Source: Saccostrea cucullata (lineage: Eukaryota). Taken from it: a stretch of 64,000 nt of DNA. Shown here in pieces: positions 1,426-47,613 of the stretch (the first letter of the stretch is position 1; the number at the start of each line of letters is the position of its first letter). The position numbers and the translations under genes are program-made. The notes below the pieces were generated by a model. It did no database searches and was not told the origin of the DNA. It saw only the letters and a list, made by a program, of their open reading frames with translations. The stretch lies in the NCBI RefSeq assembly GCF_032062105.1, contig NW_026935833.1, positions 1 through 64,000 on the forward strand. The letters are read 5' to 3'.

Positions 1426-1449
1426 TTTGATAATTATTGTATAAATAAT

Positions 1450-3887: not shown

Positions 3888-6800
3888 TCAGTAGTCTTTG
3901 GGTCTATTTCTATAGTTGACAATACACAGGGCTATGATAATTATGACTAGCAGTGAAGATAAGGCTGTCAGTGACCAAGTGGAGACCTGAAAATTCTCAC
4001 TGGTGTCCTGTAATGGTGCTGTGGTGACGATAGCTGCAAAACAAAAACACAATTAGTACCAGACTTGTATTCAATATTTGAAGTACAAGAATTTTGAACT
4101 AGAACTGTCCATTAGGGACAAATACCCCCGCTGTGTTTTTTCAGAGTAGGTGCCAATTCACAAATATTTTATGGATCTATTAAGAGGTGTTCACTATTGT
4201 CTTAAAACAAATCGAGTGAAAATATAATTGCGGTGAAAATATAATTGCATGCTCATTAATTTTTTTCAATTTATGAATCTAAGGTGCAACCAAATAAAAC
4301 ATCAATACTAATACACTGTAATAGTTTTTTTTTTAAATTTCATTAAAAAAAGAAACTGCAATTATTTGTCATGCTACTCTGAAAAATAATTGTTGAAAAA
4401 AGAAATATTATACAGAATCAAATTAATCTTTATAACTTTATATCAAATTCACTTTAAAAATAATAAAGTGCCCAACACAGCATGATACTCCAGTCAAATA
4501 TTGTTCATTCAATTAATATAAACAGTTTAGAGTGTGAGGAAATCATGGCAACCTTTAAAAAGATTTCCATATTTTTTTTTCCTTTTGATATTTGTTTAAA
4601 CATCTCCTGTGGTGTAAGCATTAATTATAACAAATAATCATCAAATGGTTGCATTATAGCTTGACAAATGCTCCTCCCCCACAAACAAACACATATGCAT
4701 ATATCTTTCATGTGGGACATGATGCTCTGAAATTTGTTACTTGATATTTTAATTTTTTTTTTAAATAAATCAATTTAACTAATTAGTATTAAAAACTTAA
4801 CCTATAACAAATTGATTTTAGAAATAGAAGGCTGGCCATCAAATGACATATGCTATTTAAACTGACCAGCAGTTCCTCTGTCTAATTCCCAAAGGACCTT
4901 AATCAGAGATAACAGCTAACAGAAATGATTGAGACAGCTAGCTTTCCTACATTGAACTCATTAATTAATCTTTGACTGGATGCATGTCCACTGATAAATG
5001 CCAAGGGATGCAATTTTCTGTTATCAAAATTCTCCTTGACCAGTGCTTGATAATTATACCCTTGGGAGAGGTAGATTATCTCTTATAAAATAACATTTGT
5101 TAAGGATTGCTGTAAAGTATATAATGAAAAAATATTATTTTCTTAATTTAACATTTTTTAAACAGGGATACAGAAACACTCTTATATTTTTGGGATTGTG
5201 TAATTCAATAGTAAATGACAGGTTTCTTTTTAAAATTTCACTTAAATTAAAGGTCATGGTGACCTTAAAATAGGTCATGACACACCTTCTACCCAAGATG
5301 CATAAACTGGCCAAGTTTGATGATTGTCAGTCTAATAGTTTTCTAGTTATGAACCAAACAAAACCATAAAAGAAAAAAGAAAAAACACCTGTAAAATGCA
5401 GAAAAATTACCCAATCATGATGAAAATACCAGGTGCACAACTTCATATGGTGAATAATAATTTTCAGACAAATCCATCCAACAGTTTCTGAGAAACGGTC
5501 CGGACAAAATCTTGTCTACAGACAGACAGACAGATGGACAGACAGACGGACATGCTGATTCCAATATACCCCCCTAAACTTCGTTTGCGGGGGTATAATA
5601 ATCTGTCAGAGTAGACCAACCTCATGCAAAATTATAAATCATTTACACACTTTTTCTGTATTGTAACAAAAAGTCAAGTCAGCCTAATTATCAAGATTTT
5701 TTCCTTTGTATACTAAACCTATACTAAACATTCTGATCGTTGATAAAAAAAAATTTGTATCTCATAGGCTCCTAGGTTTTATAGGTTTTCGTACAGAAAT
5801 TGATACAGAATAATAAAGAACTTCATCCCTAAGACTTACTTTGAGGGCGCGAGGCCAGCTGTGGGAAGTACGTGGACCAGAATCCGTAGTCCTTCTGTCT
5901 GAAGTTTGTGTAGTTGTAGGAAGAGTTACTGATGTAAAAATAGCTGTGGTTGTATATATTATGCTCTCGCCATGTCACATTTTTAAAATTAATCAGATTA
6001 AATCGCCTAGGGATAGGATCACTGCAAGAAAAAAATTATTTTTTATATAATCAGATGATTTAAAAACTTCCACTGTTCAAGTCTTGTAAGAGAAAGTCTA
6101 GTCCTCAGGCAAGACAATAAGATTTGGAATTCTCATTTCTAAACTGACAGTAAAGATACCACTATATGTACCCTAGGTTTACTAAACTTAAAAGAAAAAT
6201 AATATCTTTTTAATACTAGATTTTTTCCTAAGCCTTGATTGATGCAAATAAGCTTTGAAAGACTTGTTGCATATACATTTTTTTGCAATTACTGCATCAA
6301 TTTCTCCCAAGAATGACTTTGATTTTGAGGTACATCATTCATAAGTGTGGTAAGCAAACATTTATCACATCTCCTCATTGCTTCAATTCAGTTGTTTTTA
6401 AAGATATTGTTTACTGACCCATAAGAGGAGAAGTTTGTCCACAGACTCATCATGTATTCACTCATATTCCTGTCTGCATAGTCATACTGCTGCCTAGGGT
6501 ACAAGCCCAGTATGTTTGTGTATGTCTGGTTTATGAAGGGGAAACCAAAGATATACTGAAGTTCTTGTCCATGTGCAACACCTACAAAAATGAAACAGAC
6601 ATTTCAATGAATGCAACCAATGAATTCAAAATAATCATAATCAAAATGTATATTTGTATATAGGGGAGATCCGTCCAATTCTGGACACAGGGTAATTCCG
6701 GACAAATAATACAGTCTTTCTCTTTTGTCTTATTTTTCGGTGATTATAAATAAATGAAGTACATTCGGAAAAGCAGGTTGTCATTGTTGTCTTTTTCTAA

Positions 6801-9800
6801 AACATAATGATTCTAGAGTATTCTGAATGCTATAATTACGTCAAAAGTTAGACTTTGGACTTTTACGTTCCTGAAATCACTAGGCCTAGGCGGCAAAATT
6901 TAAACAAATTAAGGGCAATTTGACATAGAATTAAAACAACATCTAAGATAAATATTTATTTCCATTTATTTTTTTAAAATTTCTTATGTAGAGAGCATAT
7001 GTTTAAAAAGAAAAAAATGTGATGAATAATACAAAAAAATGTTAATTTTTTCATTAGATTTTATCAAACAATGTGTTCCGATTTCCCCCACTGATTTTTT
7101 TCTAGGTGGGGGAATTCCGGACGCTTGGTTTTATGGGTAGACAGACATCTCGGCCCAACGACACCTCGGCCCGTGACGGTTGACACCTTGGCCTGGACGG
7201 GTGGGCCCAAAATTATTGACACATCGGCCCATATAAAAGACCCACGAAAAAATGAGTCCAGTGCCTGAATTATTGTTTTTATTTAATTAATTACTCTTTC
7301 AGACGATTGAATGATTTTCTTTATAAAAATCAAATTGGGAAGGGGGAGGCTCTATAATATTTTTATGCAAGTCCCTAACCCGCATCTCTCTCTCTCCTGT
7401 AAAAATGTGCAATATACATGCTAAGTAATGTAAAACTTAAGCATGCTTTGTTTAACGAAGTGGCAAGTTGTTGGAATGCATTTTCTCACAAAAAAAAATT
7501 GTTCAAAGCACATATAGCTCTCCTGTCCGGATTTACCCCGCCTCTGTCTGGAATTACCCCATGTTGTCCGGACTTGCACTATTTCACCATCTGAATTCAT
7601 TTTGTTATACATAAAAGATATTTCACTGTGTTTCATGAGAATTTTCATTGCATTTTGTTGCCAAAAAGTGTTTCCATACTTTACCACTTGAAATCATAGT
7701 GTGTTGAGTGTTTATTTTCGTTTGCTGGGTGATACATATTAAAACAGGACAAAAGTGTCCAGAATTGGACAGATCTCCCCTATATACCAATCTGAAAAGT
7801 GTCAAGTTTGTGGGTGTTAACCAGAATGCTTTAACCAGAATGCTAAATTATTATGAGCACCTGCCTTTACACAGGTTACAGCAAGGAACCTGTAATATAC
7901 AAGGAAGAGTACAATTCAGACTCTCTGCTTATGGAGGGGCCTGGCATAAGAGTTTGTAGACCTATATTTAATGTATATTGCAGTAAAATTTTTGCTATTG
8001 AGACTTTACCAAAGAAAAACACCTTGCAGAAAAAAATTTACAGAATACATGCCTCTATAATATGGAAGATAGTCATTCCAAGAAAAATAGTTGAAGACAT
8101 AGAAAAATGTCTTGTTCTTTGCTGTTTGAAATCTCAAAGCCTCATTCATTCCTGTACCAAACATGTAGTCAGACATCATCTAAGACAAAAATAAAAAAAT
8201 GTTAAATCTCTAAAAGACAGGATTAGACAAATTAAAAACTCTTATACTACATGTAGTATTCTATTTCAACAGACTCTCCCTCTCTCTAAAGCTTATACAT
8301 TTGATGTTTGAACTTTTGCAAGCACCTTTTCTTACAAGTTACAAAACAATTATAAAATTCATTGATTCTATCAAGAATAAAAAGTTTATATCTGTATTAA
8401 TTAGAAGTACCTGTACTCCTCGCACAGTAAAGGCTTGAATGTTACGTGTTATAAAAATCAAACCAGCCCTTTTAAATAAATACATCATCGGTATCTTATT
8501 TAATCAGCCATATTAGTAAGCGAGGATAGGATTCCTCAAGATTTATAAACTTAATTTATATACTTACGTCGATGGTTTTGTGGAGGATCATGGTCTGATT
8601 CTTGGGCTGTGGCCAGTAAGTATACTGGTAAATCAGGGCGTCTCTCGTAACACTATCTCTTACTCCTCTATCACTTAGAAACTCATTAATTATATTGTCA
8701 AACTGAATCTTCTGTATGCCTTCATCTAGGGTTGGCAAATTAGCTGTACAGATTTACCAAAAAAATTAAATTTATTTTTTACATAGTAAACCATACATTG
8801 AATAATAACAATGTAATATGGAAAAAAAACCAGAAGTCTCTGTCGAGACTGTAGCTCTACTGGTTTGTACTTATCAAAAACCATTGCACTATTTTATGTA
8901 TCTTTGTGTAGTCTACCTGTGTGCCAAGTTATATTGAAATCAGACTAAAACTGTAGAAGGAGTAGCGTTCTAAAGGAATTTCACAGAAAATTCTATTTTT
9001 AGTAACCATGGCAACACCGTTCATCGAAATCAAAAACCGATGCACTATTCTATGTATCTTAGTGTAGTCTGCTTGTGTGCCAAGTTATATTGAAATCAGA
9101 CTAAAACTGTAGAAGGAGTAGCGTTTTAAAGGAATTTCACAGAAAATTCTATTTTTAGTAACCATGGCAACACCGTTTCGAAATCAAAAACCGATGCACT
9201 ATTCTGTGTATCTTAGTGTAGTCTACTTGTGTGCCAAGTTATATTGAAATCAGACCAAAACTGTAGAAGGAAATTAAAATTTCACAGAAAATTCTATTTT
9301 TAGTAACCATGGCAACACCGTTCATCGAAATTAAAAACCAATGCACTATTCTATGTATCTTAGTGTAGTCTACTTGTGTGCCAAGTAATATTGAAATCAG
9401 ATTAAAATTGTAGGAGGAGTAGCGTTTTGAAAAATTGTTTACAGACAGACGGACAGACAGACAGACGGACGGACGCCGGACGCATTACTATCGCATAAGC
9501 TCTTCTGGTCTCTGACCAGTAGAGCTAAAAATTAAGCCATTCATGAGTATATTTCAGCACACTTTAGATAAAATAATCTCAACATTTTCAAAAAATCTCA
9601 TCTTGTTTATTTTTTTTTTTATAAAATGCTTACAGACTCTGGTTTATTTTTCACTAATAATAAAATACTCACGAATGAAGAAGGACCCATCGTCTTTGTT
9701 GAGGCCTCCCATCACTACAATAGGTTTGAAGTTGTAGAGTTCTCTCATTTGTTTGGGATGGTCTGGTAGAAATGCAGCGACTGTCCCCACCAATGATCCA

Positions 9801-12079
9801 TCCACTAATGGACCCCAGGGGTTCCCCACAGAGCCAGGCTGAAAGAGTGGAGGAAACAGAAACTTTACTTAACAAAATTTTAGATATTTTTTTTCTTAGT
9901 ATTTGAAAAATTTGCAATTTGTACATTAAAATTAAAACATTATGTGCATCAAGAGTTAGTTAAGGAAAACTGTAGAACAAATATTTGAATAAAATTATTT
10001 TGAATGTTTTACTGAATGTAGTATCTTTTTGAATAAAGAAAAAAATGCGACAAACATAGTTATAATGAATTGACGCTTACAGAAAAGAAATTTTCATTCC
10101 CAAAGGCTTTAAAATATATTGTGATCTTCATGGATATAACAAATTATGCTCATAGCGAAGGAAAATCATCCATCCCTGACACTTTCTTTTCAGGAGTGTT
10201 TTACTTTAATGTATGATTTTTATTAAACCTACCCTTAGTCTGACTTTGGACGAGGCATTTACAATCTCTCCAAACGACCTGTGTTCCCTGAGACACTGAG
10301 TCAACCTGAACATGTCCCCTGTAGGGCAGCCCAGCTCACGGGCCAGCTCCTGGGCATAATACTGGGCATCATTATTAGTCTTTATAATAGCCCACTCACT
10401 CCTGTCTGAACCACTCTGCATGATGGCCCGATGGAAGAGGTCTGAATTTAGAGTAAATATAATAATTTCATTAATAAAAAGAATACACTGTACTGAAATA
10501 GAAATACTGTAGCTCATCAACAGTAAAACCTTGTGCTTTGCAATATTTGGATTACCCTCTTACACTACTGTTGTTAGAATCTGCTCTATGTACTTACTGA
10601 CACTCCTTGGGGAGAGAATCTGTAAGCCAACACTTGAGGCTCCTGTATTTTGTCCGAAAATGGTGATGATCCCGGGATTTCCTCGGAAACTTCTGATATT
10701 TTCTTTTACAAACTCCAGTGCCCTGACCTGGTCCCACATTCCGTAATTCCCTGGAGAGTTGGCATCATTGGTACACAAAAACCCTACAGAATGAGTCAAT
10801 ATTGTGAATGTAACAAAGAGAAACATACTGGGAATATACAAGGGACAAGTTACACTTTTCTTAACTAACTAAAATTTACATAATGAGTCAAAATCATGTG
10901 TTTCTTTTAAGAAAATTAAGATTCCTGTGAAACATGAATGTAGCCAACTCAGCTGCACTGTAGAGCAAAGAAAAAACTCCAACATGTAAGTGCCGGAAAA
11001 ACAAATGTTGTATCTATCGCTTTGATTTTTATCGTCAATGTCAACCATGTCAATGTCAACTGTCCTGCATTTTTAGCATGAAACTTGTAAACAACATTGA
11101 ATTGAAGCAAGCAGAAGTGCGGAATAAGTTATGATAATCTTTTTTTTAACTTTATTTTGTATCGAAATTCTCAGTTATCCAACATTTATTACTGTGGAAT
11201 TAACTGTGGTTTTGTATCTACAGAATAAAACGTCTTACCAAGAGGTTTTAGTCAATAATTATAAGTAATCTAATCACCTATTGGGTCTCTTACTTAGAAA
11301 TGCCTTCTTGTAGTTAAAAGAAACTATTCCCTTTTGGGCATCTTACAAATTACATGTAGTACTTGGAAGTTGTCAGCAATTAGAGGTGAATAAACCAAGT
11401 TTGGTTCTCTTGTCTAGTGCTATTATTGTTTTGTAAATTGCTGTTGCAGTTCACTTCCTGACATGAAGTTAAATGCAACGATACTCAGGCAAATGCTTCT
11501 AGTCTTGCTTGAATATATTTAATGGTTACCATACCCTGCCATGGGCTCTTGCCATATAAAACTAATTTTAGTTGAAAGCTTTCTCAGTAAGTCTTGATTT
11601 CTCTTACCTAGTGGCCCCAGTCTGTAGTTAAATGTGACCACCACCACATCCCTCTCTGCCAGGAAGACCCCGGGGTACTCCTGTGAGGCCCCCATGGTGT
11701 ACCCCCCACCATGGATAAAGACCATTACTGGATAAAGTGTGGGACTATTGCTAGGGATTTCTTCTGTATTCTATAGATACAAAACATATATTATTAAAAT
11801 AATTGAGTATATAGTGAACATCATCAGCATTTGGAAAGGTTGAAGAATCATAATGAACATAATTTTGTGTAAAATATAAACATTCTGAAAATGAAAGAAC
11901 TTGGATAAAATCATGTAGCTTACACTTGGTGCAAAAATGTTCATGTAGAGACAGTCTTCGCTGATGTTGGCACTGCCCATGTTTGGAACAGTTTCCCTGA
12001 CATACCACAGATGTTGTGGACAGGCTGGTTTGTAGGATTTAGCCTGCAATACTCCCTCCCAATATGGTCGCTCTGGCTT
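3888..12079 (-). CDS. Catalytically inactive carboxylesterase type B / neuroligin-like membrane protein, copy 1: exons 2-11 intact, exon 1 absent locally
   Basis: Exons 11924-12079, 11608-11770, 10598-10783, 10233-10441, 9673-9838, 8568-8743, 8053-8179, 6419-6581, 5840-6021 and 3888-4033 have the same lengths and phases as copy 2, with no stop or frameshift seen. Motifs EDCLY, HGGGY, NYRLG, GQNTG, GVAHGQE, a TM helix and tail NYRNRPKDY*. Confidence 0.8.
4097..5599 (+). mobile_element. Helentron/Helitron-derived non-autonomous element (HINE/CvA-like) in esterase-like intron 10
   Basis: Starts AACTAGA. Ends with a (GACA/GACG)n microsatellite and hairpin ATACCCCC..GGGGGTATAAT. Absent in the paralogous intron at ~24120. 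Confidence 0.75.
6663..7780. mobile_element. Non-autonomous DNA transposon with TIRs, TA target
   Basis: TIRs GGGGAGATCCGTCCAATTCTGGACAC / GTGTCCAGAATTGGACAGATCTCCCC, flanked by TATATA on both sides, with subterminal AATTCCGGAC repeats. Confidence 0.9.
8826..9530 (+). mobile_element. HINE-like element with about 4 internal ~150-bp tandem repeats
   Basis: Units start AAAAACC(A/G)xTGCACT at ~8876, 9032, 9186 and 9333, followed by (GACA/GACG)n and terminal hairpin AGCTCTTCTGGTC..GACCAGTAGAGCT. Absent in the paralog. Confidence 0.8.
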
Positions 12080-12665
12080 CTACAAAGTTCGACAAAGGCT
12101 TTATATAATTTTAAAGAGCCACATGTCTATAAATATGAAATATCCTTGCAATATAACTGATACCGAGGCTAGAGTTTGCCATCATATTGAATTGCATTAG
12201 TTACCCTTAAAGCAATAAAGAGCACAATGACCTAGATAAGATTTAAGTAAATTGGTTTGCTACAATTCATGCAGCATATCCCAATTTTTAAAATCCTACT
12301 GACTGAAAATTCAATTAAAAGATCTTGCAAAGTTCAATTTGTTTTCTATGTATTCACAATTGATGAGTCCTTGATCGATCAGTGTTATACATGTATGCCG
12401 TATTACGCGGCTAGTTTAATTGTATCTCTGTTTTTTAACATTTTGTCATGCAAAAATATTAATCCTTTATTAAATTAGCATTCAACAGAATTTAGAAGGT
12501 TGCCAAAAGTAAACATATAAATACACATATAAAATTAATACAATGATACAAAAAAGAAATTTTTTAACAGATACAAAAATATTTAATTTGTTTGCAATGA
12601 ATTTTTTTGAATTGTAAATTTCTTTATCTCTACAAATTTAACAGTGATAGAAAACTTTTTTTCAG

Positions 12666-14104
12666 ATGTTAATTCGACAGAAGTCCAAAACGCCAAAAAG
12701 AGACGGGTCCAGACAGGCAAAAGTGATCAGAAAACTGAAAGAAAGGTGACCTTATCAGCTGGAGAACGTAAACGTCATCCTAAAGATGTAGGTCAAGGAA
12801 AGGATAAAGAGGCACAGCTTCAGGATGTCAGTGTGAAGGAGTCATTGAAAAGAAAACGCGGGAAGAAATCGGAAGACTCTGCCCGTTCTGATGTAGTATT
12901 TAAAACGAAGATTGCTAAGCGAGTGCTTCGGTCTTCAATTAACTACAACAAAGATAGAAATGAAAAGGTAAACAAGCAGGCTGATTCTAAACAGAGGTTA
13001 GGATTAAAGAAAAACGGGGACAAAAAGAGAGACGTTCAACGTAGAAATCTGTCTGAGAAATTTAAAACCCAAAGTACACAGAAAAAGACCACGAAATCAA
13101 TAGTAAGAGGTTCGGCCCATAATAGGAAACCAATTTCAAAGAAGGAAGAACAATCAAGACCAAATAGTCGCCTGAATGCTAAAGCTGAAAGCTTTAAAAA
13201 GTCAAAAGCAAAGACGAACAAAAAAATTTTGCCGAAAAATAATCGCATCAGAAAGCGCGCTCAGAAAGTACAAAATTCCGTACCAGATGTAACGTCTGCA
13301 AAACCCTTTTCAAACTTGTTTTTAAAGAAAATTACTGTAAAAAATCATCATACAATACACGAGAAGGAAGGGAATATACATGGGATCAGTGTATCTGAAG
13401 ACAATCTAGTATGGGTGAACCATTTGATAAATACAGTACATCTTCGACATACAACAGGGAAGATGATAAGAAGTTTTAAATTAGATTTCAGACCCGTATT
13501 CAATTGCTGCACACCCTCTGGTGACATTCTTGTAACACAGGGATATGGTGCCGGTGCTAAGCCTACAATAAGCTTAATATCAAGAGAGGGAGATGTAAAA
13601 GAGTTAGCCGATCTTTCCTCGTATGCTTCAAATCTTTGTGGAATTTTATGTCAAGATGAAAGAATATACGTTGTAGCCTTTATGGCACTAGATAAGAATT
13701 ATTTCGTTATCAAACTTAATATGAACGGAGAAGTTGAACACGTTTATCACACACAAAAAGCGTCAGAAAATATAAATCAGATTATTTCTATAAATGGTCA
13801 AATAGCTGCACTTCGTACAAACTCTGACGGTTTTATGCCTTTGGAAGTTGATCACATTTCACCAAGAAAGATGAACAAAATTAACATAACCTTATACTCT
13901 GCGAGTGCCTCAGTGGACAAGTTTGGGAACGTTATCATGGGATCAAACGCCTCCCTCTTCATCATAAATCCAGGTCTGGAGTACATGCACGAAATACCAA
14001 CTGGTACATCTGAGGAAATAATCTCAACAGCTACTGATCAACAAAATCAACTGTGGTTCGGTACCAGATCTGGAAAACTCTACTCTACAAAATACCTTAA
14101 ATAA
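12666..14104 (+). CDS. Basic-tail beta-propeller family member B: intact large exon 2, no exon 1 found
   Basis: Acceptor ttttcag|AT at 12665/12666 with the same phase-1 pattern as the paralogs. About 215 aa K/R/S-rich region, then FSNLFLKKI..GNIHGISVS..TQGYG..DQQNQLWFGTRSGKLYSTKYLK. The first in-frame Met lies inside the propeller, so an upstream exon is needed. Confidence 0.75.
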
Positions 14105-14819
14105 CTGACTGCATTTAGTTCATGTTTTAACGGATGCGCAGAACTGGAAGGAAGTTGAATTAAAGAGTTTGACGTACAACAAGGAAAACTGAAATATGGA
14201 AAAGAAAAATCTTCATCTACTATTGCTGTATCATAGTGATTAGTTAATATGAAGTGTAAAATACATTTCAAGTCTTCGACTACTTTACATGTGTAAAGTT
14301 AAATTGACTCTTGCTGGATACTCAGTAATGCAAATCGTACCACAATCTAAGGATTTCCAAAAACCTTATAGAAAGTATATATACTACTAATTCACGGAAA
14401 TGAGATTGACTTATCAAAACTTTCGTTTTTCGAAAATCTCAGCGACTTTTACTGATTGATTGATTTTTTCTGTACATTTCCTTAATTGAATTTTTGTGTA
14501 GCAGTGAGCTTAGTTGATTTATAACAAAAACCTCATTACTGTATAATTTATCTATTTCGCCAAAAAAAAAATAGTCAAAGTACGGAAGTAGATGTAGATA
14601 ATAAATTATTGCATCTTTCTGTTTTCTATAAATATACATATTTTTCTTGTACATCCTTATAAACACAGGTTTCTTTTCTTCTATAGGACACCATAACCTT
14701 GGACAATTTAGTTCATACATTTTCAAATACTGAGTTCATATTTTTTCTAAATTTGTGAAATTTTTTAGATAACGAGCGGTAATGGAGCTCAAAAGTCCAT
14801 TTAAACAAAAGCAAAGCAA

Positions 14820-15850
14820 ACACGGGTCTCTAAAACATCAGAGGTGGGATCAGGTGTCATGGAAAAATAAGCATTCCCTACCAACAGGTCAACCCGCCAT
14901 GTGCTCCTTGTCATGTTCGGGAATAACAGAAAAACGCAGAAAATTCATTGTTTATATAATGCCCCAACAAATTAGTTTGAAAGACGTCAGTTAGCATTTG
15001 ACATAATGATAGATTGTAATTGCTGACAAGGTCCTTGGACGGGATGGTTGATATCCTTGTTACATCAACTTGTTGTTCAATGACTTGTCTTGTTTTAGAA
15101 AATGTTAATATAAACATAAGGGATTGCTTTCGCCTATCAAATCAACTAGGGGATATAAACCCCGTATGCATGCAGGTGATAAAGGTATATTGTTATATAC
15201 TAGTAAGTTGACGATTGGAGAGTTGAAGTTATCACGTTTATCATAAAGCTTTGTTACCATTCACGTCTTCTTCAAGTAAAATATCCAAATATGAAGCAGA
15301 TGAATCAGACTCTGTGTCATATCTTTTATTTCAAGCCCTCTGGGATATATCGAGTCGAAATATGAATAAAAGTAACTAGTCGTCAATATATCTAACTCAC
15401 AGGCACCTAGCGTTACTTATTGCTCTTTTAAAATTAAAGAAAATTAAACCCCTGTCTAATGATAAGATAGGGGGTATGTTTTTGTTTATTAAAAGAAAAA
15501 TAAGTAAGGTCAGGTGCCTGTGATCTAAATGTCGATTTGAAGTGTTTTCTTCTTATTTTTTTTGAATAAATTCTGCTTTGAGTTTATACAAAAATTGATC
15601 GGCAAATAGTGTGACTAATAACGAGCCATGAGAATTCCGACAGATTGTTGGGAGAACTGGTCTCTAAAACAAACTACATACATGTATATTTAAAGTGTTT
15701 TGTCAATCAGTAATTCAAAACATTTTTTCGATACCCACTTCAGGGTACTTGTGTCTACAATTAGGATGTTTTAACAAAATAATGTTGCAAATGACCTATG
15801 ACAATGTAAATAAATTTACGAGTTCCATTTCTATTGAAGAAGTAGCTGTC
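14820..15850 (-). mobile_element. Decayed Penelope-like retroelement reverse transcriptase remnant
   Basis: Minus strand gives degenerate RT motifs (QQSVGILM near 15625-15650, RYIDD near 15380-15395, LYDKRDNFN near 15220-15250) and a 3' tail GGCGGGTTGACC..CACCTGATCCCACCTCTG also seen at ~58800. Confidence 0.6.
15398..15522. mobile_element. Small MITE inserted beside the YIDD motif of the RT remnant
   Basis: TIRs CACAGGCACCT / AGGTGCCTGTG. Flanks ATCTAACT / ATCTAAAT form an 8-bp TSD with one mismatch (hAT-like). Confidence 0.7.
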
Positions 15851-16968
15851 AATGATTTTAAAAATAGCCTGGATTTTAACATGTTTAATTTATCTTGAGG
15901 AATACTGAGTAATTGTATAAAGTGTTGAAAGACATATATCATTATTTCACATTTACTAAAAGTTTCTCGGAATATTTAAGTTTCCACATCTGATTTACAC
16001 CACTTCCCCAATATATTGCTGTACAATACTTCTTTCCTGCTGTTAATATTTTAGTCTTTCCTGCTGTTAATATTTTAGTAAGGAGTGAAGAAAGAGAATT
16101 TAGATCTCTAAAAGTAAAATTAAACATGTTAAAGTTAACGGAAAATTCAGTGTGTAAATAATGGCCTAAGAATTCGTATAAAAAACGTCAGTCAGCATTT
16201 GACTCAATCATAATAATATAACAATAATTCAGACTAGTTTTCATCAGTATGCACACGCAAGGCATATTCCTTGTGTTTTATTTCATTTCGAGGAGACTTA
16301 TAATGTATCAAGAGTTGTCGTTCGTCGTTATTTCGAAACAACTTCAATGGTGAACCTTAATCTGTTAATCGTTGAACTTTAGACCTAGAGAGGGCGTACA
16401 GGCGAGTTTTTAGATTATATGACCGTGAAAATATTTACGGTAAGCAATATTTTGTGTGTAGCCTTTATCTAAATCTATAACATTTATAAAATGTCGATAT
16501 ATACACGCATTTATCGCTGTGAGTGAATGTATTATAATGTACTTCCGCCAGGTATGAATATATGAATATGTACATGTATGATACCTGATACATAAATATA
16601 AGCATATTGAAACTGAAATGATATGATACTGAATTCATGTACTTTCATTTAATTGTACTATGTCCTAAGGGACTACAGAAAACATATTATAAGAGATACA
16701 ATTGCGTACAAACTACAAAGATAGTGCAATATGACACTATGCATCGATCATGCATCTTGCTTCATTAATTTGTTTTATTTGAGCATATTTTCCAACATTT
16801 AAATTAAACACTTTTTGTGATAAACATAAGCGTCTTTAATGTTGTAAATTTTGGATTAACAGAAAAGTGAGAACTGAATGATATCAGAAGTAAGGTTATC
16901 ATGATTTTATGGCACATATGCTGGGGTTCAAGCTTTTACCTTATTTTTTGATTTCAGGTATACCAAAA

Positions 16969-19584: not shown

Positions 19585-20789
19585 TGTGATCATTTCAGCG
19601 GAAACACCTCGGGGGTGTCAAAGAGATGTTATAATAATCTGATATTTCAATTAAAAACTCACTATTTTTTCATAATATGAGATTTAGCTGGAATAACACT
19701 CTGTTTAAAATATCAAATGCACAAGAATTAACCCATGTCTTATGAAGATCTTTTGTTTACGTTTTCATAAATAGCTAAATATATGGAAATCTCACCACAA
19801 ACTTTTAATAAAAGTCACAATCCCTTTCACCAATTTGAAGATCAAAACAAGGAAAAGAAGACAAGAATGCAAAAAAAAGAGGAATTTTACTTAAATTCAA
19901 GACTTGGAAGAACCAAACTGTTGCAAAATGAGAAGGTCAAATCTAAATGAAAGGACTATATATGCATCGTGTTCACAATATTGTTCAAAAGTTCAAAGTA
20001 AAACCAATCATACATTTCTGCTCGATCATTACATTGATACTAGTATATCAAGAAGGAAATATCACACACACATACATGTATGCAGGGCTCTGGTCGATCT
20101 TTTCTAACAGTTTTCAGCTATTTTTCATATCGAGATTTTAAAGACGATGTTGTGTACTCTGGTTTAACTAATAAATATACATCATATTTCTTACTTCTGT
20201 GCTGTTTGTTTGTCAATTGACGATACTGAAGATGTTTTTATTGCATCACTAATTCCTGTATAGTTTTGGGTCATTTGACTGTTATTTCATGTAGTGAGAG
20301 GGCGATTTAAGTTTTTAGAACTTGTGCCCAATCCTGACCCATTATAAATATGTACAATATGATTAAAATTAATTATACATGTGTTAATTGAAAAAAAAAC
20401 ATTATATTTCAATTTTTATATATTTGCGACAAATTGCAGTCATGTCTCACTAGTATTATTTGTTATAATCAATCCCTAATAATGAAATATGTTCAAACCA
20501 TTTGACTATAATTGAAATGTTAGCACTGGAAATTATTACCTATCAATACCGCATCCTCCTTTGAAGATGACACAAAAATCAACTGAACACAAAATTCGGA
20601 TTTGGATGATATTATTGTTTTTTCATTAACATAATATTAGCTTCATAAGCTCTGATATTTTTTTCATATTTTTGAAAAATTAAAATAATTCTTACAAAAA
20701 AATTCTACAATCCAATACCCTAGAATAGTACTATTTATTTCTATGTTTTACGGAGTATTATATATTTACGCATTACAGACAAACCAGAA

Positions 20790-22490
20790 ATGGAAACACG
20801 CCAAAGACGAGTCAGAACTTCCATTAAAGCAAGTGCTGAAGAGAATGAAGTTAGAAAGAGTTCGAAATGCCGGAAAAGGAAAAGTGGGGATGAACAAAAG
20901 GGTGAGTGATAATAAGAAATTGTGGGAGAAAATATCTTTGAGGATGTCAGTTGTTTGAGAGGAATATATATTTTTTTTAATCTTTTATTTTTAACCAGTT
21001 TAGCTATTACCCCGGTAATTAAGACTCTGCAAGAAAGTTAAATATTACCGTTCAATAATAGTATATTCACCAAACCATAGCGAACTAAATACAATATCAA
21101 GTAAATAAAGTCTCAAGAGAAATTTTCGATCAGATTTATTTGGAAATATTTTTGATAACTTTTGATATACCGGTATTATTGATCGGGGAAAACATTTTCA
21201 GATAAAAGTTCATCAAAGGGTGACTCCTCCAAACAGAGACGTATTCATTTTCACCATAACAACGGTGGTATGGAAATGCAAGGACCTGCATCAACGAGTA
21301 AACTTAAAAGCAAGTGAACAAATCAAAAGGAAAACAAGCAAGTCTTGGTATTGAAAACTCAGAAACTAATTCTGTAAAATCAGTCAATTTGCAAAGGAAA
21401 AATATCCAAAAAAAAATCAAGAGTTCTGGCGGCAAAGACAAGGAAAGTGGCTCGAAGTTCTCACAAAAAGGCTGAAAATAGCCAGGAAAAAGTAGGTAAA
21501 AACTTTAAATCAAAACTACAGATGAATGATCCAGATGCTGGGAAAAGGGGGACAGTGGGAAAATTGAGGAACCAAAGGAAGATGGTAGAGGCAAACAAGC
21601 AAAGCTTACCCAAAGGTCAAAAATTAACAAAGAATATCAAAAATTCTAAAGAGTCGGAAGTTTACACATCTGCACCAAAGGCCTTCTCTGACTTGTTTTT
21701 AACAAAAGTTGACATAAAATTTAATCTCAAATCAAGTCTTGGAAGCATTCATGGAATTAGTATATCAGGTGACAATATATGGGTGAATTACTTATCAATG
21801 AAGCAGGTAAAAATGCTCAGTTCTTCGGGTGAGATTCTCAGATGTTTCAGTCTAGACCATTGCTAGCCAGTGCTTAATTGTTGCTTGCCATCAGGCGAAC
21901 TTCTCGTGACGCAGGGTTTTGCTGGTGGTTCTAAGCCTATAATTACGTCAATATCACCTGAAGGAATCATCAAGATTTTTGCTAATCTTTCATCGTATGC
22001 TAAGCACTTGTTCGGAATTCTCTGTAAAGATGAGAAAATATATGTCATTGGATGCAACAGTTCTACCACTAATGGTAACCACTTTGTTCTTCGACTTAAT
22101 TTGATTGGAGAAGTAGAGCATGTGTACAATTCCAATCTGCCCTCTGAAAATATAAAGGGCTTAATTTCTCTCAATGGACAAATAGTTGGCCTTCGAGTCA
22201 AAAACTCTCAAATGGTAGCACTAGAGAAGGATGGAATTTCCTCGACTGTGTTAAACAAAGTTTTCAACAGGAACATGTATGCAGGAAGTGCATCGGTAGA
22301 CAATCGTGGAAATGTTATTATAGGAACAGGCACAAAACTCACCTTCATCAACCCAAGTTTGGAAAAATCGCATGAAATAAGCACTGGTTTTTCTTCAAAC
22401 ATCATTGCCACAGCTGTAGACAACCAGGATCAACTGTGGATAGGTACTGTGAATGGAGAGTTGATCGCGGCTAAATATCTTCGAGTTTGA
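20790..22490 (+). pseudogene. Basic-tail beta-propeller family member A (exons 20790-20901 and 21202-22490), disabled
   Basis: Exon 1 METRQRRVRTSIK..CRKRKSGDEQK-G|gtgagt. Exon 2 has a -1 frameshift at ~21306 giving TGA at 21315, a +1 in the A-run at ~21410 and CAG>TAG at 21864 relative to A'. Confidence 0.85.
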
Positions 22491-23912
22491 TAATACACAC
22501 TCAGCCTTCACTACATTGTAAATTATATTGTTTAGATTAAATACAAGGTGTATATCAAAAAACGGAGATGTCTTGTTATTTTTCCTTCACATTTGATACA
22601 CATCTTTAGCTCAGTTTGAAATGAAAAAGAACACTTAAAGGCAGTTGTTCCGAATTTCACGGTACATATTCTGGTTACTTTGAATATCAATAGGTACCAT
22701 CTATTGAAGGAATAGCCTAGAAACTCTAAAAGATATATTATCCCTGTCCCCTTCCCATCTTGAATTTAAATATTAATGTACATTTATGTTGTCAATGCAA
22801 AATAGGGTATAACTGTCTCTACTTGAAGACCATCTAATTTCTTAACTTCCAAGTTTGTGCCGAGTTGTACTCAGGTGACCTATTGCAATCTGTTTTGTCT
22901 GTCATCGTGAGGCATCTGTAAACATTTGATCATTTTTAGCTTCTTCTCTGTAATTGCCCAACTATTTTCAAATAATTTTGGTATAAAGCATCTACGGGCA
23001 AAGGAAGGACAGATATTTTGAATTCCATTGCTCTGCCCCTCCCCTTACCCCAGCCTACAGGTTTTGCCAAATACATGTACAATAACATTGATGCAAAATA
23101 TTTTTTGCTTCTTGAATAAGTGGTCAACTATTAGCATGATTAATAATCAGAATCAATCAATAATAATCGAATTTATGCATATTTATTTCATTTTACTTTA
23201 TTAAATTGAGTGCCAAAACTATAATAATTCATTGTACAAAAAATGATTCATGAATACCTGGTATTTAGATCAAAGATATTGATAATTTTTGTCATCTCTC
23301 TTGCATACAAAAATACATACCATATCAAAGCAAATGTCAAGCTACTTAATGAAAATAATGGCACTTGATATTTGTACAATTGTAAACGTAGAAAAAAATA
23401 TATATACACTCTATAAAAATAAGTGGGTGAAGTTCATACACATTCCATACATAACAATACACAACTGCACCATTCATTAAAAATGACATTTTAACAAAAA
23501 AAAATATGCATCATTCACAACCAGCCAAATAATTCAGGAATGTAATACATGTATATAAGAAAGGATAAATGACAATATACATTTATTATCAATATTATCA
23601 ATTAATAACATTAAAATCACAATACATAAATAAAAAGTTAATACCACTAAATGGAATGATCCATTAAAAATGATATGTGGACAGAACTCACAATAATGTC
23701 AAAACATGTATTGCCTCATAAAATTGATATGTTCATTGAGCATTGCATAATGAAATAAAAAAGTACAGGTACATGTATATATAAAATCAATAATATTAAC
23801 AATTGTAAAAGGAATGAAATATTAGATTTTAGTGATCATTTACTAAATTTAATCCTTGAGGTTTTAAGCATGTCTTTGGTAAATTGGCCCTCTAGGGCCC
23901 GTCCCTCCTTAA

Positions 23913-26384
23913 TCAGTAGTCTTTGGGCCTATTTCTATAGTTGACGATACACAGGGCTATGATAATGATGACTAGCAGTGAAGATAAGGCTGTTAGAGAC
24001 CAGGTGGAGACCTGAAAATTCTCACTGGTGTCCTGTAATGGGGCTGTGGTGACAATAGCTGCAATACACAAATAGTATTTTAGACTAGTATTCTGCACTT
24101 GAGGTACAAATAAGAATTCTGAATGGGTAGATCAACTTCACGCATAAAATATGAAAATCATTTACCCAAATCCCTTTTTCTGTGTAGTTACATGATCAAG
24201 TTGGTCTAATTATCAAGATTTTTTTCTCTGTATACTAAGCCTTTACATGTTCTGGACACATTGATAAAAATTCTGTATCGCATAAGATATAGGTTTTCAT
24301 ACAGAAATTGATACAGAATAATAAAGAAATTCATTCGTAAGACTTACTTTGAGGGCGCGAGGCCAGCTGTGGAAAGTATGTAGACCAGAATCCGTAGTCC
24401 TTCTGTCTGAAATTTGTGTAGTTGTAGGAAGAGTTGCTGATGTAAAAATAGCTGTGGTTGTATATATTATGCTCTCGCCAGGTCACATTCTTAAAGTTAA
24501 TCAGATTAAATCGCCTGGGGGTAGGATCACTGCAAGAAAAAAGATGATTTCTTTAAAACCATATGATTTTAAAACATTCACTAATCTACATTCTTTTGGC
24601 ATGGCTGCATCAACTTATCCAAATAATGACCTTAATCTTGAGGTACATTATATAAGTTGGTAAGCAAACATTGATCACATTTGAAATCTAATTGCTTCAT
24701 CTCTGTTTTTTTGTTGACTATGATTTACTGACCCATAAGAGGAGAAGTTTGTCCACAGGGTCATCATGTATTCACTCATATTCCTGTCAGCGTAGTCGTA
24801 CTGCTGCCGAGGGTATAGGCCCAGTATGTTTGTGTATGTCTGGTTTATAAAGGGGAAACCAAAGATGTACTGAAGTTCTTGTCCATGTGCAACACCTACG
24901 TAAATGAAACAGAAATGTCAATAAATGCAGCTAATAAATTCAAAATAATCATACTCAAAATTTATATGTGTATATACTGTATACAGGGAAATTTTTGCCC
25001 CCCGTTTAATTTTCGCCCCTTTTGCCCTAACCTCATTTGGGCAAATTTAAAACGGGGCGAATTCATATAATACAGTATAATTACTTAAATAAGACTTTGA
25101 CAGGGCGAATTTAAAACGGGGCAAAATTGTCTGCAAGTGTGAAAGGGCGAAAATAAAACGGGGCGAAAATAACCCTGTATACAGTATATACAAATCTGAC
25201 AAGTGTCAAGTTTGTGGGTGTTAACCAGAATGCTTTAACCAGAATCCTAAATTATTATGAGCACCTGCCTTTGCACAGATTACAGCAAAGTACCTCTACT
25301 ATACAAAGACAAGAGGCCCATGGGCCTTATAGGTCACATGAGCATCATGCAACAACTTTCGAACGATTGAATTTGGTTCATGTTTTAAAATAGACATCAT
25401 GGCATTCACAATTTTGAAAGAGGCACCATTGCTAATTATAACTATACAACTGCATGTTTAGTTTGGTTACTTTTAACATTGTTTAAAATACCAATAGACA
25501 GAGTAGCAGAACAATAATGTACATTTCAACTAATCAGTAATGATTAGCAATAATCAGTAGTGCCACTACCACACATGAACCCCTGACCCTTGGTCCACAC
25601 ATTTCACAATTTTGGAAAAGGCACTCTTGCTTACCAAAAATGTTTGACTAATACCAAGGACCAGATTTCATACAATTAATTCATTTTCAGTATATAAGTA
25701 GACCCCCCTCTATGGTACCCCTGACCCAGGGGCCTTGAAATTCATAATTCAGGAAGAATGGTCCTTGCTTATCATAAATATATATTAGGTAAATCTGCTA
25801 AATACCCAGGAGCAGAGGAGAAATTTTCAAAGATTTAATTTATTTTCACTATATAATCAATAGAGCCCCACCCTTACACCAGAACCCCTGACCATGGGGC
25901 CATAAAATTCACAATTTTGGAAGAGGCATTCTTCCCCATCATAACTATGTACTTACTTAGTTTATTTAATACCCAGGAGCAGAGAAGAAGATTTATAAAG
26001 AAATTAGCATTTTCACTATATAATCAATAGAGCCCCACCGTAGCACTAGAACCCCTCACCCTGGGGCAATAATTTCACAATTTTGGTAGAGGACTCAATG
26101 GACATTACATTCATGCTAACAGTTTGACTGCTTGATGTCCAGGAGTAAAGAAGAAGATGTTTAAAGATTGCATTAATTTTAGTGGTTTTGGCCCCACCCC
26201 TCAGGCCCCAGGGGGGCAGGGAGCATGAAATTCATAATTTTTGTTCCCCTTCACTCATAGATGCTTTATGCCATATTTGGTTGAAATTGGTTGAGTGGTT
26301 GCGGAGAAGAAGCTAAAAATGTTCAAAAGCTTATGACCGATTGACGACAAACGACGTATGATGGACGACGACATACGAAAACAG

Positions 26385-26424
<40 letters not shown>

Positions 26425-29400
26425 GTTAAATTGAAATTCTATGCTTATGGAGGGGCCTTGCATAAGAATTTTAAGATCTATATTTAATGTATTTTGCAGT
26501 AACATTTTTGCTATTGAGACTTTACCACAAGAAAACACCTTGCAGATTTTTTTTTACAGTATACATGCCTCTATAATATGGAAGGTAATCATTCCAAGAG
26601 AAGTAATTGAAGACATAAAAAAATGTCTTGTTCTTCGCTGTTTGAAATCTCATAGCCTCATTCATTCCTGTACCAAACATGTAGTCAGACATCATCTAAG
26701 ACAAAAATAAGAAAATGTTAAATCTCTAAAAGACAGGATTAGACAAATTAAAAACTCCTCATACTACATGTAGTATTCTATTTCAACAGACTCTCCCTCT
26801 CTCTAAAGCTTATATATTTGATGTTTGAACTTTTGCAAGCACCTTTTCTTACAAGTTACAACACAAGTATAAAATTCATTGATTCTATTAAGAATAAAAA
26901 GTTTATATCTGTATTAATTATAAGTACATGTACTCCTCACACAGTAAAGGCTTGTACGTTACGTGTTATAAAAATCAAACCAACTCTTTTAAATAAATAC
27001 ATCAGCGGTAGCTTATTTAATCAGCCATATTAGTAAGCAAGGATAGGATTGCTTAAGATTTATATACTTTATTTATATACTCACGTCGACAGTCTTGTGA
27101 AGGATCATGGTCTGATTCTTGGGCTGTGGCCAGTACGTATACTGGTATATCATGGCATCCCTCGTTACGCTATCTCTGACCCCTCTATCACTTAGAAACT
27201 CGTTAATTATATTGTCAAACTGAATCTTTTGTATGCCTTCATCTAGAGTTGGCAAATTAGCTGTAAAGAATAAAAGTTTAATTTGAATGAACCATATACC
27301 TGTTGAGAGGGCTTATTTAGGCAATGCCTGGTGTCTAATAAAATAAAGGAGATGGGTGAACATGACGAGAGATAAGCCCATAGCGCAACAAACATGAAGG
27401 TGAAAAATAAAATCTCAATTTTATCAAAATTTTCCTTAATATTTCATCTAACATTAAAGTATACTTTATGTAAAATCCCTACAACTTCCACAAATCTCAT
27501 GAAGATTGAAGTTATTTGCCTATAAAATATTATACACACATGAGAGAGGAAAAAACGGGTCATTTTTTCACACTATAACACTATTTTTTGATATGAGTGG
27601 GTCTTTTCTCCATTTTTTTGAAAGTTAATGCAAACATGCATATTTTGGTTTCCAAAATTATGGAGCAAAGACCCACTATACCTTTGAAATATAATTTTAT
27701 GACATAACTTTCGTATCTTTTCAAGAAATACTTGAAGTCCCTTAAGTCAATGGTCATATCACAAACATGATTTAAATGCCACCCTTCATCAGGACTTGTG
27801 TAGCGTAGTGGTTAGCATGCTAGTCTCCACAAAAAATGCAACTCAGGATTTTTATTACCAGGGTTCGAACCCAATGGATACCATATTATTTTTCTTTTAT
27901 AAAAGAATAAATTTTAACAAAAAATTTTTCTCAAAACTTTTTCTTTATCATGACTTTATTAAAATCAACGATGAGAACTTTACTCTAAATATTTAATTCA
28001 CAATTTGAAAATGAATTTTATATATCTGAAGCTAGTGGGCTTTCTGCACACTAAATTCACCTATCTCCTTTCTTAAAATCATTTTTAATTATCACATTTA
28101 ATCATAATACTCAGTAGTCAGTACTGTATTTTTTTTTTTAAATATTACATCTTCTAAGACAGTTAATGCCATTAATTTAGTAATGAGAGCATATATTTCA
28201 GCACATTGAAGGTAAAACAATTTCAAAACTCCTAATTCCTCTCATATTGTTCATCTAAGAAAAACGCATACAGACTCTAGTTAATTTTTCCCTTATAAAA
28301 TACTCACGAATGAAGAAGGACCCATCGTCTTTGTTGAGGCCTCCCATCACTACAATAGGTTTGAAGTTGTACAGTTCTCTCATTTGTTTGGGATGGTCTG
28401 GTAGGAATGCAGCGACTGTCCCCACCAATGATCCATCCACTACTGGACCCCAGGGGTTCCCAACAGAGCCAGGCTGAAAGAGTGGAGGACACAGAAACTT
28501 TACTTTAAAAATTTTTAGATATTTTTTTCTATTTTGAAAAATTTGCATTGTAAATAAATTAAAACATTATGTGCATCAAAAGTTAGTTAAGGAAAACTGT
28601 AGAACAAATATTTGAATAAAATTATTTTGAATGTTTTACTGAATGTAGTATGTCTTTGAATAAAGAAAAAAATGTGACAAACATAGTTAAAATGAATTGA
28701 CGCTTACAGAAAAGAAATTTTCATTCCCAAAGGCTTTAAAATATATTGTGATCTTAATGGATTTAACAAATTATGCTTATAGCAAGCAAAATCATCCAGC
28801 CCAGGAACTTTCTTCTCGGAGTGCTTTACTTTAATGAATAATTTTTATTAAACCTACCCTTAGCCTGACTTTGGATGAAGCATTTACAATCTCTCCAAAC
28901 GACCTGTGTTCCCTGAGACACTGAGTCAACCTGAACATGTCCCCAGTCGGGCAGCCCAGTTCACGGGCCAGCTCCTGGGCATAATACTGGGCATCATTGT
29001 TAGTCTTAATAATAGCCCACTCACTTCTGTCTGAACCACTCTGCATGATGGCGCGATGGAAGAGGTCTGAATTTAGAGTAAATATAACAATTTCTTTAAT
29101 AATCAGAATACACTGTACTGAAATTTAAAATACTGTGGCTCATAGACAGTAAAACCTTGTCCTTTGCAATATTTGGATTACCCTCTTACACTACTTTTAT
29201 TAGTATCTGCTCTATGTACTTACTGACACTCCTTGGGGAGAGAATCTGTAAGCCAACACTTGAAGCCCCAGTATTTTGTCCGAAAATAGTGATGATCCCA
29301 GGATTTCCTCGGAAACTTCTAATATTTTCTTTTACAAACTCCAGTGCCCTGACCTGGTCCCACATTCCGTAATTCCCTGGAGAGTTGGCATCATTGGTAC

Positions 29401-31239
29401 ACAAAAACCCTACAGAATGAGTCAATATTGTGAATGTAATGCAGAACGAAGAGACATATATTGGAAATATACAAGGAATAAGTAACAATTTTCTTACTCA
29501 ACTTACAAAATTTACATAATGAGTCAAAATCAAGTGTTTCTTTTAAGAAAATTAAGATTCCTGTGAAATATGAATATAGCCAACTCAAATGCATTGCAAG
29601 GAAAAATCTTCAACATGTAAGTGTACCTATCACTTTAATTTTTATCATCAATGTCAACAATGTCAACTGTCCTGCATTTTAAGCATGAAACTTGTAAACA
29701 ACATTGAATTGGAGCTAGCAGAAATGCGGAATAAGTTATGATCATCTCTTTTGAAGACTATCAAAATTCTCAGTTTTCCGACACTTATTAATGTGGAATT
29801 GACTGTGGTTTTTTATCTACAGAATAAAACCTCTGACCTAGAGGTTTTAGTCTGTAATTATAAGTAACCTATCACCTGTTGGGTTTCTTGCTTAAAAATT
29901 CCTTCTTGTAGCTAAAAGAAACTATATCCTCTTTTGGGCATCTTACAAATTACATGTAGTACTTGTCAGCAATTAAAGGTAAATAAACCCAGTTTGGTCC
30001 TCTTGTCTAGTGCTATTATTGTTTTGTAAATTGCTGATGCAGTTCACTTCCTGACTTTGAAGTTAAATGCAACAGTACTCAGGCAAATGCTTCTAGTCTT
30101 GTAAAGTTGGAATATATTTAACGGTTACCATACCCTGTCACTGGCCTCTTACCAAATACTTCTGAATTTAGGTTCAATTTTCCACACTAAATCTTGATCC
30201 TCTTACCTAGTGGCCCCAGTCTGTAGTTAAATGTGACCACCACCACATCCCTCTCTGCCAAGAAGACCCCGGGGTACTCCTGTGAGGCTCCCATGGTGTA
30301 ACCCCCACCATGGATAAAGACCATTACTGGATAAAGTGTGGGACTATTACTAGGGATTTCTTCTGTATTCTGTTGATACAAAACATATATTTTATTAAAA
30401 TAATTGAGTATACTGAATATCATTAGCATTTGAAAAGGTTGAACAATCATAATGAACATGATTCTGTATAACATATAAACATTCCAGACAAGAAAGAACT
30501 AAAATAAAATCATGTAGCTTACACTTGGTGCAAAAATGTTCATGTAGAGGCAGTCTTCGCTGATGTTGGCACTGCCCATGTTTGGAACTGTTTCCCTGAC
30601 GTACCACAGGTGCTGTGGACAGGCTGGTTTATAGGATTTAGCCTGCAATACTCCCTCCCAATATGGTCGCTCTGGCTTCTACAAACAAAGTTCGAAGAAG
30701 GCTTTATATAATTTTTAAAAAGCCACATGTCTATAAATGTTAAATATCATAGAAATACAACTGATACTGAGGATGGAGTTTGCCATCATATTGAGTTGCA
30801 TTAGTTACCCTTAGAGCAATAAAAAGCACAATGATCTAGATAAGATTTAAGTAAATTGGTTTGCTACATTTCATGCAGCATATCCCAATTTTTACAACCC
30901 TACTGACTGAAAATTCAGTCAAAAGATCTTGCAAAATACAAGAGCATCCATAACAGCTGTATATGTTTCGATGAATTTAAAGTAAACATGGTAATGTAAA
31001 AAAAAAATTACCCTAAATCTGTAGAGCTTTGGGTCACTGTTGTATTCTATGGGTCGTTTTGCGTAGGGAATGCCGAGGAATATATTGATATGTTTTCTGT
31101 TTTTCTGAGCATACTGCGAGGGAATAGCGAAACCTTCAACCGGTCCATGTTGAGTCTTGACGCGTACGCTATATGTATAACTAAATTCTGCAATGTCTAT
31201 AAAACTTAAAATTAAACAGAAAATAAAGAGAATCCCCAT
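23913..31239 (-). CDS. Catalytically inactive carboxylesterase type B / neuroligin-like type I membrane protein, copy 2, complete (11 exons, 633 aa)
   Basis: Exons 31012-31239, 30523-30678, 30207-30369, 29224-29409, 28858-29066, 28308-28473, 27085-27260, 26569-26695, 24733-24895, 24348-24529 and 23913-24058 total 1902 nt with consistent phases. Signal peptide [35 protein letters not shown] in place of [19 protein letters not shown], a TM helix and a 9-aa tail. Confidence 0.92.
24977..25184. mobile_element. Tc1/mariner-type MITE, TA target
   Basis: TIRs CTGTATACAGGG / CCCTGTATACAG, internal inverted TTTCGCCCC/GGGGCGAAA repeats, TATATA flanks. Confidence 0.88.
25309..26424 (+). mobile_element. 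HINE/CvA-like element with internal tandem repeats
   Basis: Starts ACAAGAGGCCCATGGGCC..AGGTCACATGAG. Internal ~170-bp repeats (CCCCTGACC..TTCACAATTTTGG), a (GAC)n tract and terminal hairpin AGGTCACCTGAGTGACTCAGGTGACCT. Absent at ~7905. Confidence 0.85.
27345..28071. mobile_element. Non-autonomous DNA transposon (AGG..CCT ends) with an internal tRNA-like segment
   Basis: TIRs AAAGGAGATGGGTGAA / TTCACCTATCTCCTTT. Internal A-box-like TAGCGTAGTGG (~27801) and B-box-like GGTTCGAACCC (~27862). Absent in the paralog. Confidence 0.6.

Positions 31240-47426: not shown

Positions 47427-47472
<46 letters not shown>

Positions 47473-47566: not shown

Positions 47567-47613
<47 letters not shown>

Follow-up and report, generated by a model that had tools for sequence, protein, structure and literature searches.

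A constrained esterase-like gene body without its own first exon at a tandem duplication in the oyster Saccostrea cucullata

In the oyster Saccostrea cucullata, the first 64 kb of contig C17970 (hereafter the window) carry a gene for an esterase-like membrane protein on the minus strand. A single first exon, exon 1, lies upstream of two complete sets of downstream exons. The nearer set, exons 2–11, is copy 2. The further set, exons 2'–11', is copy 1, which is intact and under purifying selection and has no first exon of its own. An initial annotation of the window had noticed this arrangement and proposed that both bodies share exon 1. We confirm the observation and find partial support for that interpretation. 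A recent loss of exon 1 is slightly more likely. On balance, we favour a real tandem arrangement with a junction much younger than the divergence of the halves that it joins. The signal of selection would then date from a time when the genes were complete.

The window belongs to an assembly of 1.17 Gb in 23,869 contigs and contains no N. Window positions 1–12337 repeat 20998–30941 on the same strand, with 80–92% identity. To the right of 12334, the sequence is repeated at the beginning of contig C11042 (reversed, 85–92%), and the repeat continues in contig C15453 (95–96%). The duplicated unit is head-to-tail, spans 18.6 kb and contains three propeller genes together with esterase exons 2–11. 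The order along the locus is P2', P3', P1 and body 1, then P2, P3, P4 and body 2, then exon 1, where P1 to P4 are the propeller genes. The junction flanks match copy-2 intron 1 and C11042. Homology between the esterase copies ends at ~12333–12337, inside intron 1 and close to the ~12331 given initially (Table 1).

Saccostrea echinata has a single P2-P3-P4-esterase order and no sign of the junction; one 11.9-kb stretch, between the P2 and P3 orthologues, was unseen. Reads and contigs of other samples were compared over one stretch, window 9550–14300 (4,751 letters), and what we say of contigs holds for the matches listed. Organism A, another species, has one copy. Its contig appears to leave the window at ~12329, and the junction is apparently absent. 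The contig of P0002, from a more distant oyster, is 85% alike and ends before intron 1. The junction pattern gave 0 matches in the metagenome collection. A single-copy order in a relative, with a novel head-to-tail junction, identifies a tandem segmental duplication. At present, the locus is a partial tandem duplication, a known kind, with unusually divergent halves.

Divergence along the unit is uneven. The copies differ by 2–6% in the middle (16.3–22.7 kb) and mostly by 8–14% at the ends. We read the well-matched middle (16300–22700) as a zone of gene conversion or crossover. The propeller region exists in apparently three versions. That in the window has no transposon at 16590, while those in C11042 and C15453 both have it and are ~97.5% alike.

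The two esterase bodies agree exon by exon, as the initial annotation had described. Each of the ten copy-1 exons equals its counterpart among exons 2–11 of copy 2 in length and phase, and there is no internal stop codon. In both bodies all acceptors are AG and all donors GT, except for a GC donor after exon 8 (window 26568 and 8052); S. echinata has GT at this position. Stop codons lie at 23913 (copy 2) and 3888 (copy 1), with predicted polyadenylation signals, AATAAA, at 23187 and 3182. The phase-0 donor of exon 1 is compatible with the phase-0 acceptors of both bodies. The three antisense propeller genes placed between the bodies by the annotation are P2, P3 and P4, located there on the plus strand.

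Selection was assessed from non-synonymous (dN) and synonymous (dS) divergence and their ratio, omega. Over 557 codons the copies have 76 synonymous and 6 non-synonymous differences (dS 0.23, dN 0.0047, omega 0.02). All six amino acid differences are conservative (V325L, M406L, V427I, M443L, T516S and T528I) and none falls in exons 2–5. An early count for exon 7, of 16 differences in 176 nt with 14 synonymous, was exact; the other two are M406L and V427I. CpG hypermutation as the source of the high dS is ruled out, with CpG involved in just 12 of the 82 differences. Using S. echinata as the outgroup (dS 0.42 to both copies), we then assigned changes to branches. Copy 1 has a branch dS of 0.110 and dN of 0.0035 (omega 0.03). 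For copy 2 the values are 0.119 and 0.0011. The copy-1 branch carries 4 amino acid changes, where 142 would be expected if it were neutral. The constraint is real and branch-specific, as the check proposed at the outset was meant to establish. With no disabling changes, a long-dead pseudogene is ruled out, which bears out the first impression of this copy. Selection can have been absent from copy 1 for no more than ~6.5% of the branch (dS <0.007). Among the 30 best G-protein-coupled receptor loci of the assembly there was no allelic pair, and neighbouring regions gave only transposon matches.

The same junction beheads both end genes of the unit, esterase copy 1 and P2, on opposite strands. 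The first coding exon of P2 lies outside the unit, at C11042:8152–8036, where the left-hand copy P2' retains its 39-residue first exon. P2 and P2' differ by dS 0.215, and the P2 branch has an omega of 0.21 in the propeller part. Hence, there are two constrained headless bodies, and either both are in use or the junction is young. The ratio dN/dS alone is unable to separate these options. Low dN/dS implies use of a headless copy only for a junction that dates back to the divergence.

The comparison with organism A bears on this age. Over 10039–12146, copy 1 has 150 mismatches with copy 2 and 153 with organism A. Within 10185–10374, a stretch picked after the fact, organism A has the copy-2 letter at 11 of 11 copy differences listed (P ~0.001). 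Copy 2 is nearer here to organism A than it is to copy 1. Such agreement would not be expected from copies born identical after the species split. Therefore, the bodies probably differed from the start, and dS makes the junction look older than it is. Read in this way, local genealogies suggest that divergent haplotypes already existed.

Exon 1 occurs once in the whole assembly, by DNA search and by protein search, and no second exon 1 was found by either. It had been described as single and in phase 0, and is both. Between the copies, a search for signal-peptide-like phase-0 exons gave 0 candidates and recovered its positive control, in agreement with the initial report of none. Exon 1 had also been called a leader. 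It does encode a signal peptide, but it is more than a leader, as its protein spans positions 4–39 of the Pfam COesterase profile, approximately the first 50 residues of the esterase fold. Exon 1 evolves more quickly than the body (omega 0.24 versus 0.04, against S. echinata), and organism B, a related sample, has either Ser or Asn at residue 68. Short transcript-derived proteins sought with P0173:1–185 gave no match.

RefSeq isoforms X2 (XP_062582094.1) and X4 (XP_062582096.1) equal exon 1 plus the copy-1 protein at 6 of 6 distinguishing residues. The RefSeq protein does not fix where the model jumps, because exons 2–5 have no amino acid differences. On sequence grounds, a model of this kind can arise when reads from a copy-1-like allele map to the sole exon 1.

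Two runs of organism B behave as RNA, with spliced joints and correct intron ends. In this sample, exon 1 is spliced to a copy-1-type body. The RNA contig X2 record 15 joins 119 nt of exon 1 to exons 2'–3' and has 0 differences from copy 1 over 267 nt, including 10 diagnostic sites. In X8 record 20, the whole of exon 1 is joined to exon 2', again with 0 differences. Among the matches listed, the exon 2' acceptor has a single loose end, exon 1. Diagnostic sites begin 48 nt into exon 2, further than the word length of the graph contigs reaches. These contigs join exon 1 to copy-1-type exons but do not show the skip that the initial annotation proposed, because the first such site is too distant to phase and the RNA is not from the sequenced animal. 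No copy-2-type exon 2–3 contig is among the organism B contigs listed; it may have been removed as a bubble.

Organism B is not the sequenced animal and is a mosaic of at least three haplotypes. It has private letters at 10275, 10743 and 11666, and at the exon 5/6 joint three haplotypes occur in one run. Organism B is polymorphic for copy-1 letters, and 10638/10641 combine with 10695 in all four ways. In one run, two exon-4 haplotypes each differ from copy 1 at 7 of 128 positions. Among the matches listed, the V325L change of copy 1 is missing from all six contigs covering that site, and the copy-1 letter at 10335 is absent. Some haplotypes probably carry copy-2 letters in exons 4 and 6. The share of words in organism B is 0.14–0.16, twice the 0.07 expected from copy 2 alone. 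Among DNA samples, the best match shared 16% of words. On average, the esterase contigs listed are 1.4–2.4% from copy 1 and 3.4% from copy 2. A propeller contig differs from P2 at 4 of 178 sites and from P2' at 27 of 178. We read organism B as resembling both bodies that flank the junction, as one ordinary single-copy haplotype would.

If the junction is young, both halves would have diverged as complete genes, each with its own first exon, gaining synonymous changes under normal purifying selection. Copy 1 would be a freshly beheaded gene without time to decay. A single young junction explains both constrained headless bodies, the esterase (omega 0.03) and P2 (0.21). The likeness of organism B to both flanking bodies, the copy-1 letters that segregate there, the agreement of organism A with copy 2, the single copies in organism A and S. 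echinata and the uneven divergence along the unit also speak for it. Very recent loss of exon 1, which the annotation had kept as an alternative, moves slightly ahead of sharing. Two routes could lead there. The one that takes about two thirds of the weight starts from two deeply diverged haplotypes of one single-copy locus. These would have been joined by unequal exchange, or by a circularised piece integrating into the other haplotype via the well-matched middle. By the other route, an older complete duplication would have been followed by recent deletion of exon 1' and the P2 head. Splicing of exon 1 to exon 2' at some leaky level would be possible, and is not needed to explain the sequence of copy 1. 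Several points weigh against a young junction. An unused copy 1 would require a junction younger than ~6.5% of the copy-1 branch. Only one exon 1 was assembled, so the deletion route needs a homozygous deletion or a missing contig. The three haplotypes in one RNA run would be explained by two expressed loci in one animal, or by a pooled sample. Finally, if decay of P1 began with the duplication, an equally dead copy 1 should carry ~24 amino acid changes, not 4. This last argument is weak because P1 and P4 do not differ significantly (P = 0.11) and P4 also has a disabling lesion.

The serious contender, to which we give less credence, is an old junction. One promoter and exon 1 would feed either body, and selection would keep both 10-exon cassettes. 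Exon 1 would splice to exon 2 across a 333-bp intron, or skip ~19 kb, past the copy 2 polyadenylation signals, to exon 2'. Cassettes of Drosophila pipe and CG42235 provide a precedent (PMC6191721). The low omega of copy 1 (0.03 over dS 0.11), its full set of splice sites and polyadenylation signal, the exact exon 1 plus copy-1 protein of RefSeq X2/X4, the RNA contigs X2 record 15 and X8 record 20 and the presence of at least three haplotypes in one run all fit. To this extent, the interpretation of the initial annotation is supported, though it would need a junction dating from the divergence. The RefSeq model was possibly forced by the sole exon 1 available for mapping, and contigs of another animal cannot phase exon 1 with a site 48 nt away. 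Copy 2 adjoins exon 1, yet no copy-2-type exon 2–3 contig is listed, for which bubble removal is a possible cause. A second rescue would also be required, because P2 could be reached from its head, on the plus strand, only by skipping the nearest body. The products differ by six conservative residues and offer little diversity to select. An exact-match scan found no docking-type pairing (75 bp after the donor; the best match was a low-complexity 12-nt T-run). We regard as doubtful the version in which one duplication cut intron 1 of two convergent genes, and both bodies are kept by long-range skipping from single first exons on opposite strands of the same 19–30 kb. If true, it would supply a complete 10-exon alternative esterase-like body and show a 3' cassette gene arising in a single oyster species. 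Improbable, by comparison, is an assembly artefact, also raised initially, in which the two haplotypes that a heterozygous animal has at a single-copy locus were placed end to end. The assembly is fragmented, the left copy reaches a contig end, the species is polymorphic for copy-like letters, and oyster assemblies are known to suffer from haplotigs (10.1101/2022.08.29.505626). Conversely, the junction is internal to a contig, with unique sequence on either side and an overlap of just 3 bp, and the apparent three propeller-region versions are one above the limit of a single-copy diploid locus. Hence, a plain haplotig is an unlikely account of the duplication. Assemblers are not known to join unique sequences over 3 bp without spanning reads. 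Scarcely credible is a first exon for copy 1 elsewhere, be it unassembled, newly recruited or supplied in trans. Assembly gaps do adjoin the left unit, but downstream of copy 1, not upstream. There is no exon-1 homologue and no signal-peptide-like exon between the copies, a leader-only exon would leave out ~50 residues of the fold, and exon 1 is the sole loose end at the exon 2' acceptor.

The readings differ in what they would mean. If exon 1 is shared and selected, the locus would be a very young whole-body version of the fly 3' cassette genes. It would also make it possible to test directly how partial duplicates avoid becoming pseudogenes. With a young junction, the locus would serve as a clean warning. 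Where deeply diverged haplotypes segregate, no shared exon is needed for tandem copies to show low dN/dS, or for a RefSeq isoform and a junction-bearing RNA contig to turn up. A young junction would also point to very old haplotypes at this locus in Saccostrea, about as divergent as neighbouring species. We found no useful literature on the S. cucullata assembly or on Saccostrea hybridisation. As the proteins are near-identical, little new protein function is at stake in either case.

Table 1. Positions of the junction, the duplicated unit, the esterase-like exons and the propeller genes in the window.
Feature	Position	Strand	Details
Duplication junction	12330..12337	.	Intron 1 of the esterase meets that of propeller gene P2; 3-bp AAA microhomology without a repeat
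Right-hand unit of the 18.6-kb tandem duplication	12334..30936	.	Left-hand unit is window 1–12334 plus the start of C11042 (reversed) plus C15453
Exon 1	31012..31239	-	Sole copy in assembly; signal peptide and first ~50 esterase-fold residues; phase 0
Copy 2 body, exons 2–11	23913..30678	-	With exon 1, 100% identical to RefSeq XP_062582093.1, isoform X1, 633 aa
Copy 1 body, exons 2'–11'	3888..12079	-	Intact, without own exon 1; with exon 1, XP_062582094.1/XP_062582096.1, isoforms X2/X4; exons 12079–11924, 11770–11608, 10783–10598, 10441–10233, 9838–9673, 8743–8568, 8179–8053, 6581–6419, 6021–5840, 4033–3888
Retained part of copy 1 intron 1, acceptor included	12080..12334	-	255 bp, versus 333 bp in copy 2
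AATAAA polyadenylation-signal match 3' of copy 1	3177..3182	-	Counterpart at 23187 after copy 2
P2, large last exon	12662..14104	+	Beheaded by the esterase junction; frame open; branch omega 0.21 in propeller part
P3	18181..19584	+	Frame open
P4	20790..22490	+	Nonsense change CAG to TAG at 21864
P1, left-hand copy of P4	174..1419	+	Frameshifted by deletions, one of 47 bp

We compared the esterase-like model with databases exon by exon; full-length searches used database proteins. The product is a 633-aa type B carboxylesterase-fold membrane protein, with a signal peptide, an esterase-fold ectodomain and one transmembrane helix. Exons 1–5 and 9 match the COesterase profile (PF00135) in order, which places the protein in this family. 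The nucleophile elbow reads GQNTG at 226–230, with Thr for Ser, and Thr is also present in Magallana and Mya. The catalytic acid position is Asp and the His is retained. Hence, the Ser-Glu/Asp-His triad with a GxSxG elbow is incomplete. With Thr in place of the nucleophile Ser, the protein is not predicted to be an active cholinesterase or carboxylesterase. The best PDB matches are neuroligins and cholinesterases, with similar scores. Like cholinesterase-like adhesion proteins such as neuroligins, the oyster protein combines a signal peptide, ectodomain, single helix and Ser-less elbow. Neuroligins have a long cytoplasmic tail and a C-terminal PDZ-binding motif. Conversely, the oyster tail after the membrane helix is ~9 residues and ends PKDY, with no long cytoplasmic domain and no S/T-x-V end. 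Orthologues occur across molluscs and form their own molluscan ortholog group, with 55–72% identity among molluscs. The tail and the ortholog group set the protein apart from neuroligins proper. Large tandem clusters of single-exon carboxylesterase genes occur elsewhere in the genome, on contigs C17428, C3364, C8432 and C11513.

The RefSeq model of P2 is patched with a six-residue start at 12391. At 13463–13640, P2 and P2' differ at 27 of 178 sites, more than P2 and its S. echinata counterpart (24 of 177). We read propeller-domain divergence here as locally very deep or fast. P1 and P4 are both broken, by different lesions, and the S. echinata orthologue is intact (515 aa). P1 has 20 non-synonymous versus 9 synonymous changes, in addition to its frameshifts. 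The transposon of the propeller region (window site 16590; C11042:1–2363; C15453:1–954) has terminal inverted repeats and is found in the left-hand unit only, where its insertion seems to be the cause of the assembly break. A 1.1-kb element related to window 47427–48287 is nested in one version. The neighbour upstream of exon 1, at window 32900–35500, corresponds by synteny to a gene for an ERGIC/COPII-vesicle protein in S. echinata and Magallana gigas. A long degenerate tandem array, with units of ~146–150 bp, occupies 50737–52465.

The oyster unit resembles a familiar class, that of recent partial tandem duplications and of polymorphic structural variants joined at microhomology. Like these, it is head-to-tail, with a few bases of microhomology, genes cut at both ends and patchy divergence. 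Unlike these, its halves are unusually distant (dS ~0.22), as far apart as neighbouring species.

Tandem 3' variable multi-exon cassettes are described in Drosophila CG42235, pipe (Pip) and PGRP-LC (PMC6191721). In CG42235, five to seven cassettes of six to eight exons follow a common exon; pipe has ten cassettes over >12 kb, and cassettes span 12–17 kb in both genes (PMC6191721). As in CG42235, pipe and PGRP-LC, a common 5' exon in the oyster is followed by tandem multi-exon cassettes with their own 3' ends, from duplication of the 3' part. These cassettes are homologous, compatible in phase and each has its own stop codon and predicted polyadenylation signal. Hence, the shared-exon architecture is already known, in CG42235 and pipe, even if sharing is true here. 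Unlike the fly cassettes, each oyster cassette is the whole body, with 10 exons that encode 88% of the protein. Six conservative residues are all that separates the products, and antisense genes lie between the cassettes. The oyster layout is also known from one assembly only, and the exact-match scan gave no docking/selector pairing. In our analysis we would not file the locus among 3' cassette genes, membership of which would require alternative use in one genotype and persistence of the layout. PEP1 of Arabis alpina also arose by partial tandem duplication with a breakpoint in intron 1, and has overlapping transcripts with common exons (PMC3527215). It is the mirror image of the oyster locus: in PEP1 exon 1 is duplicated, the body is shared and both transcripts have been demonstrated (PMC3527215).

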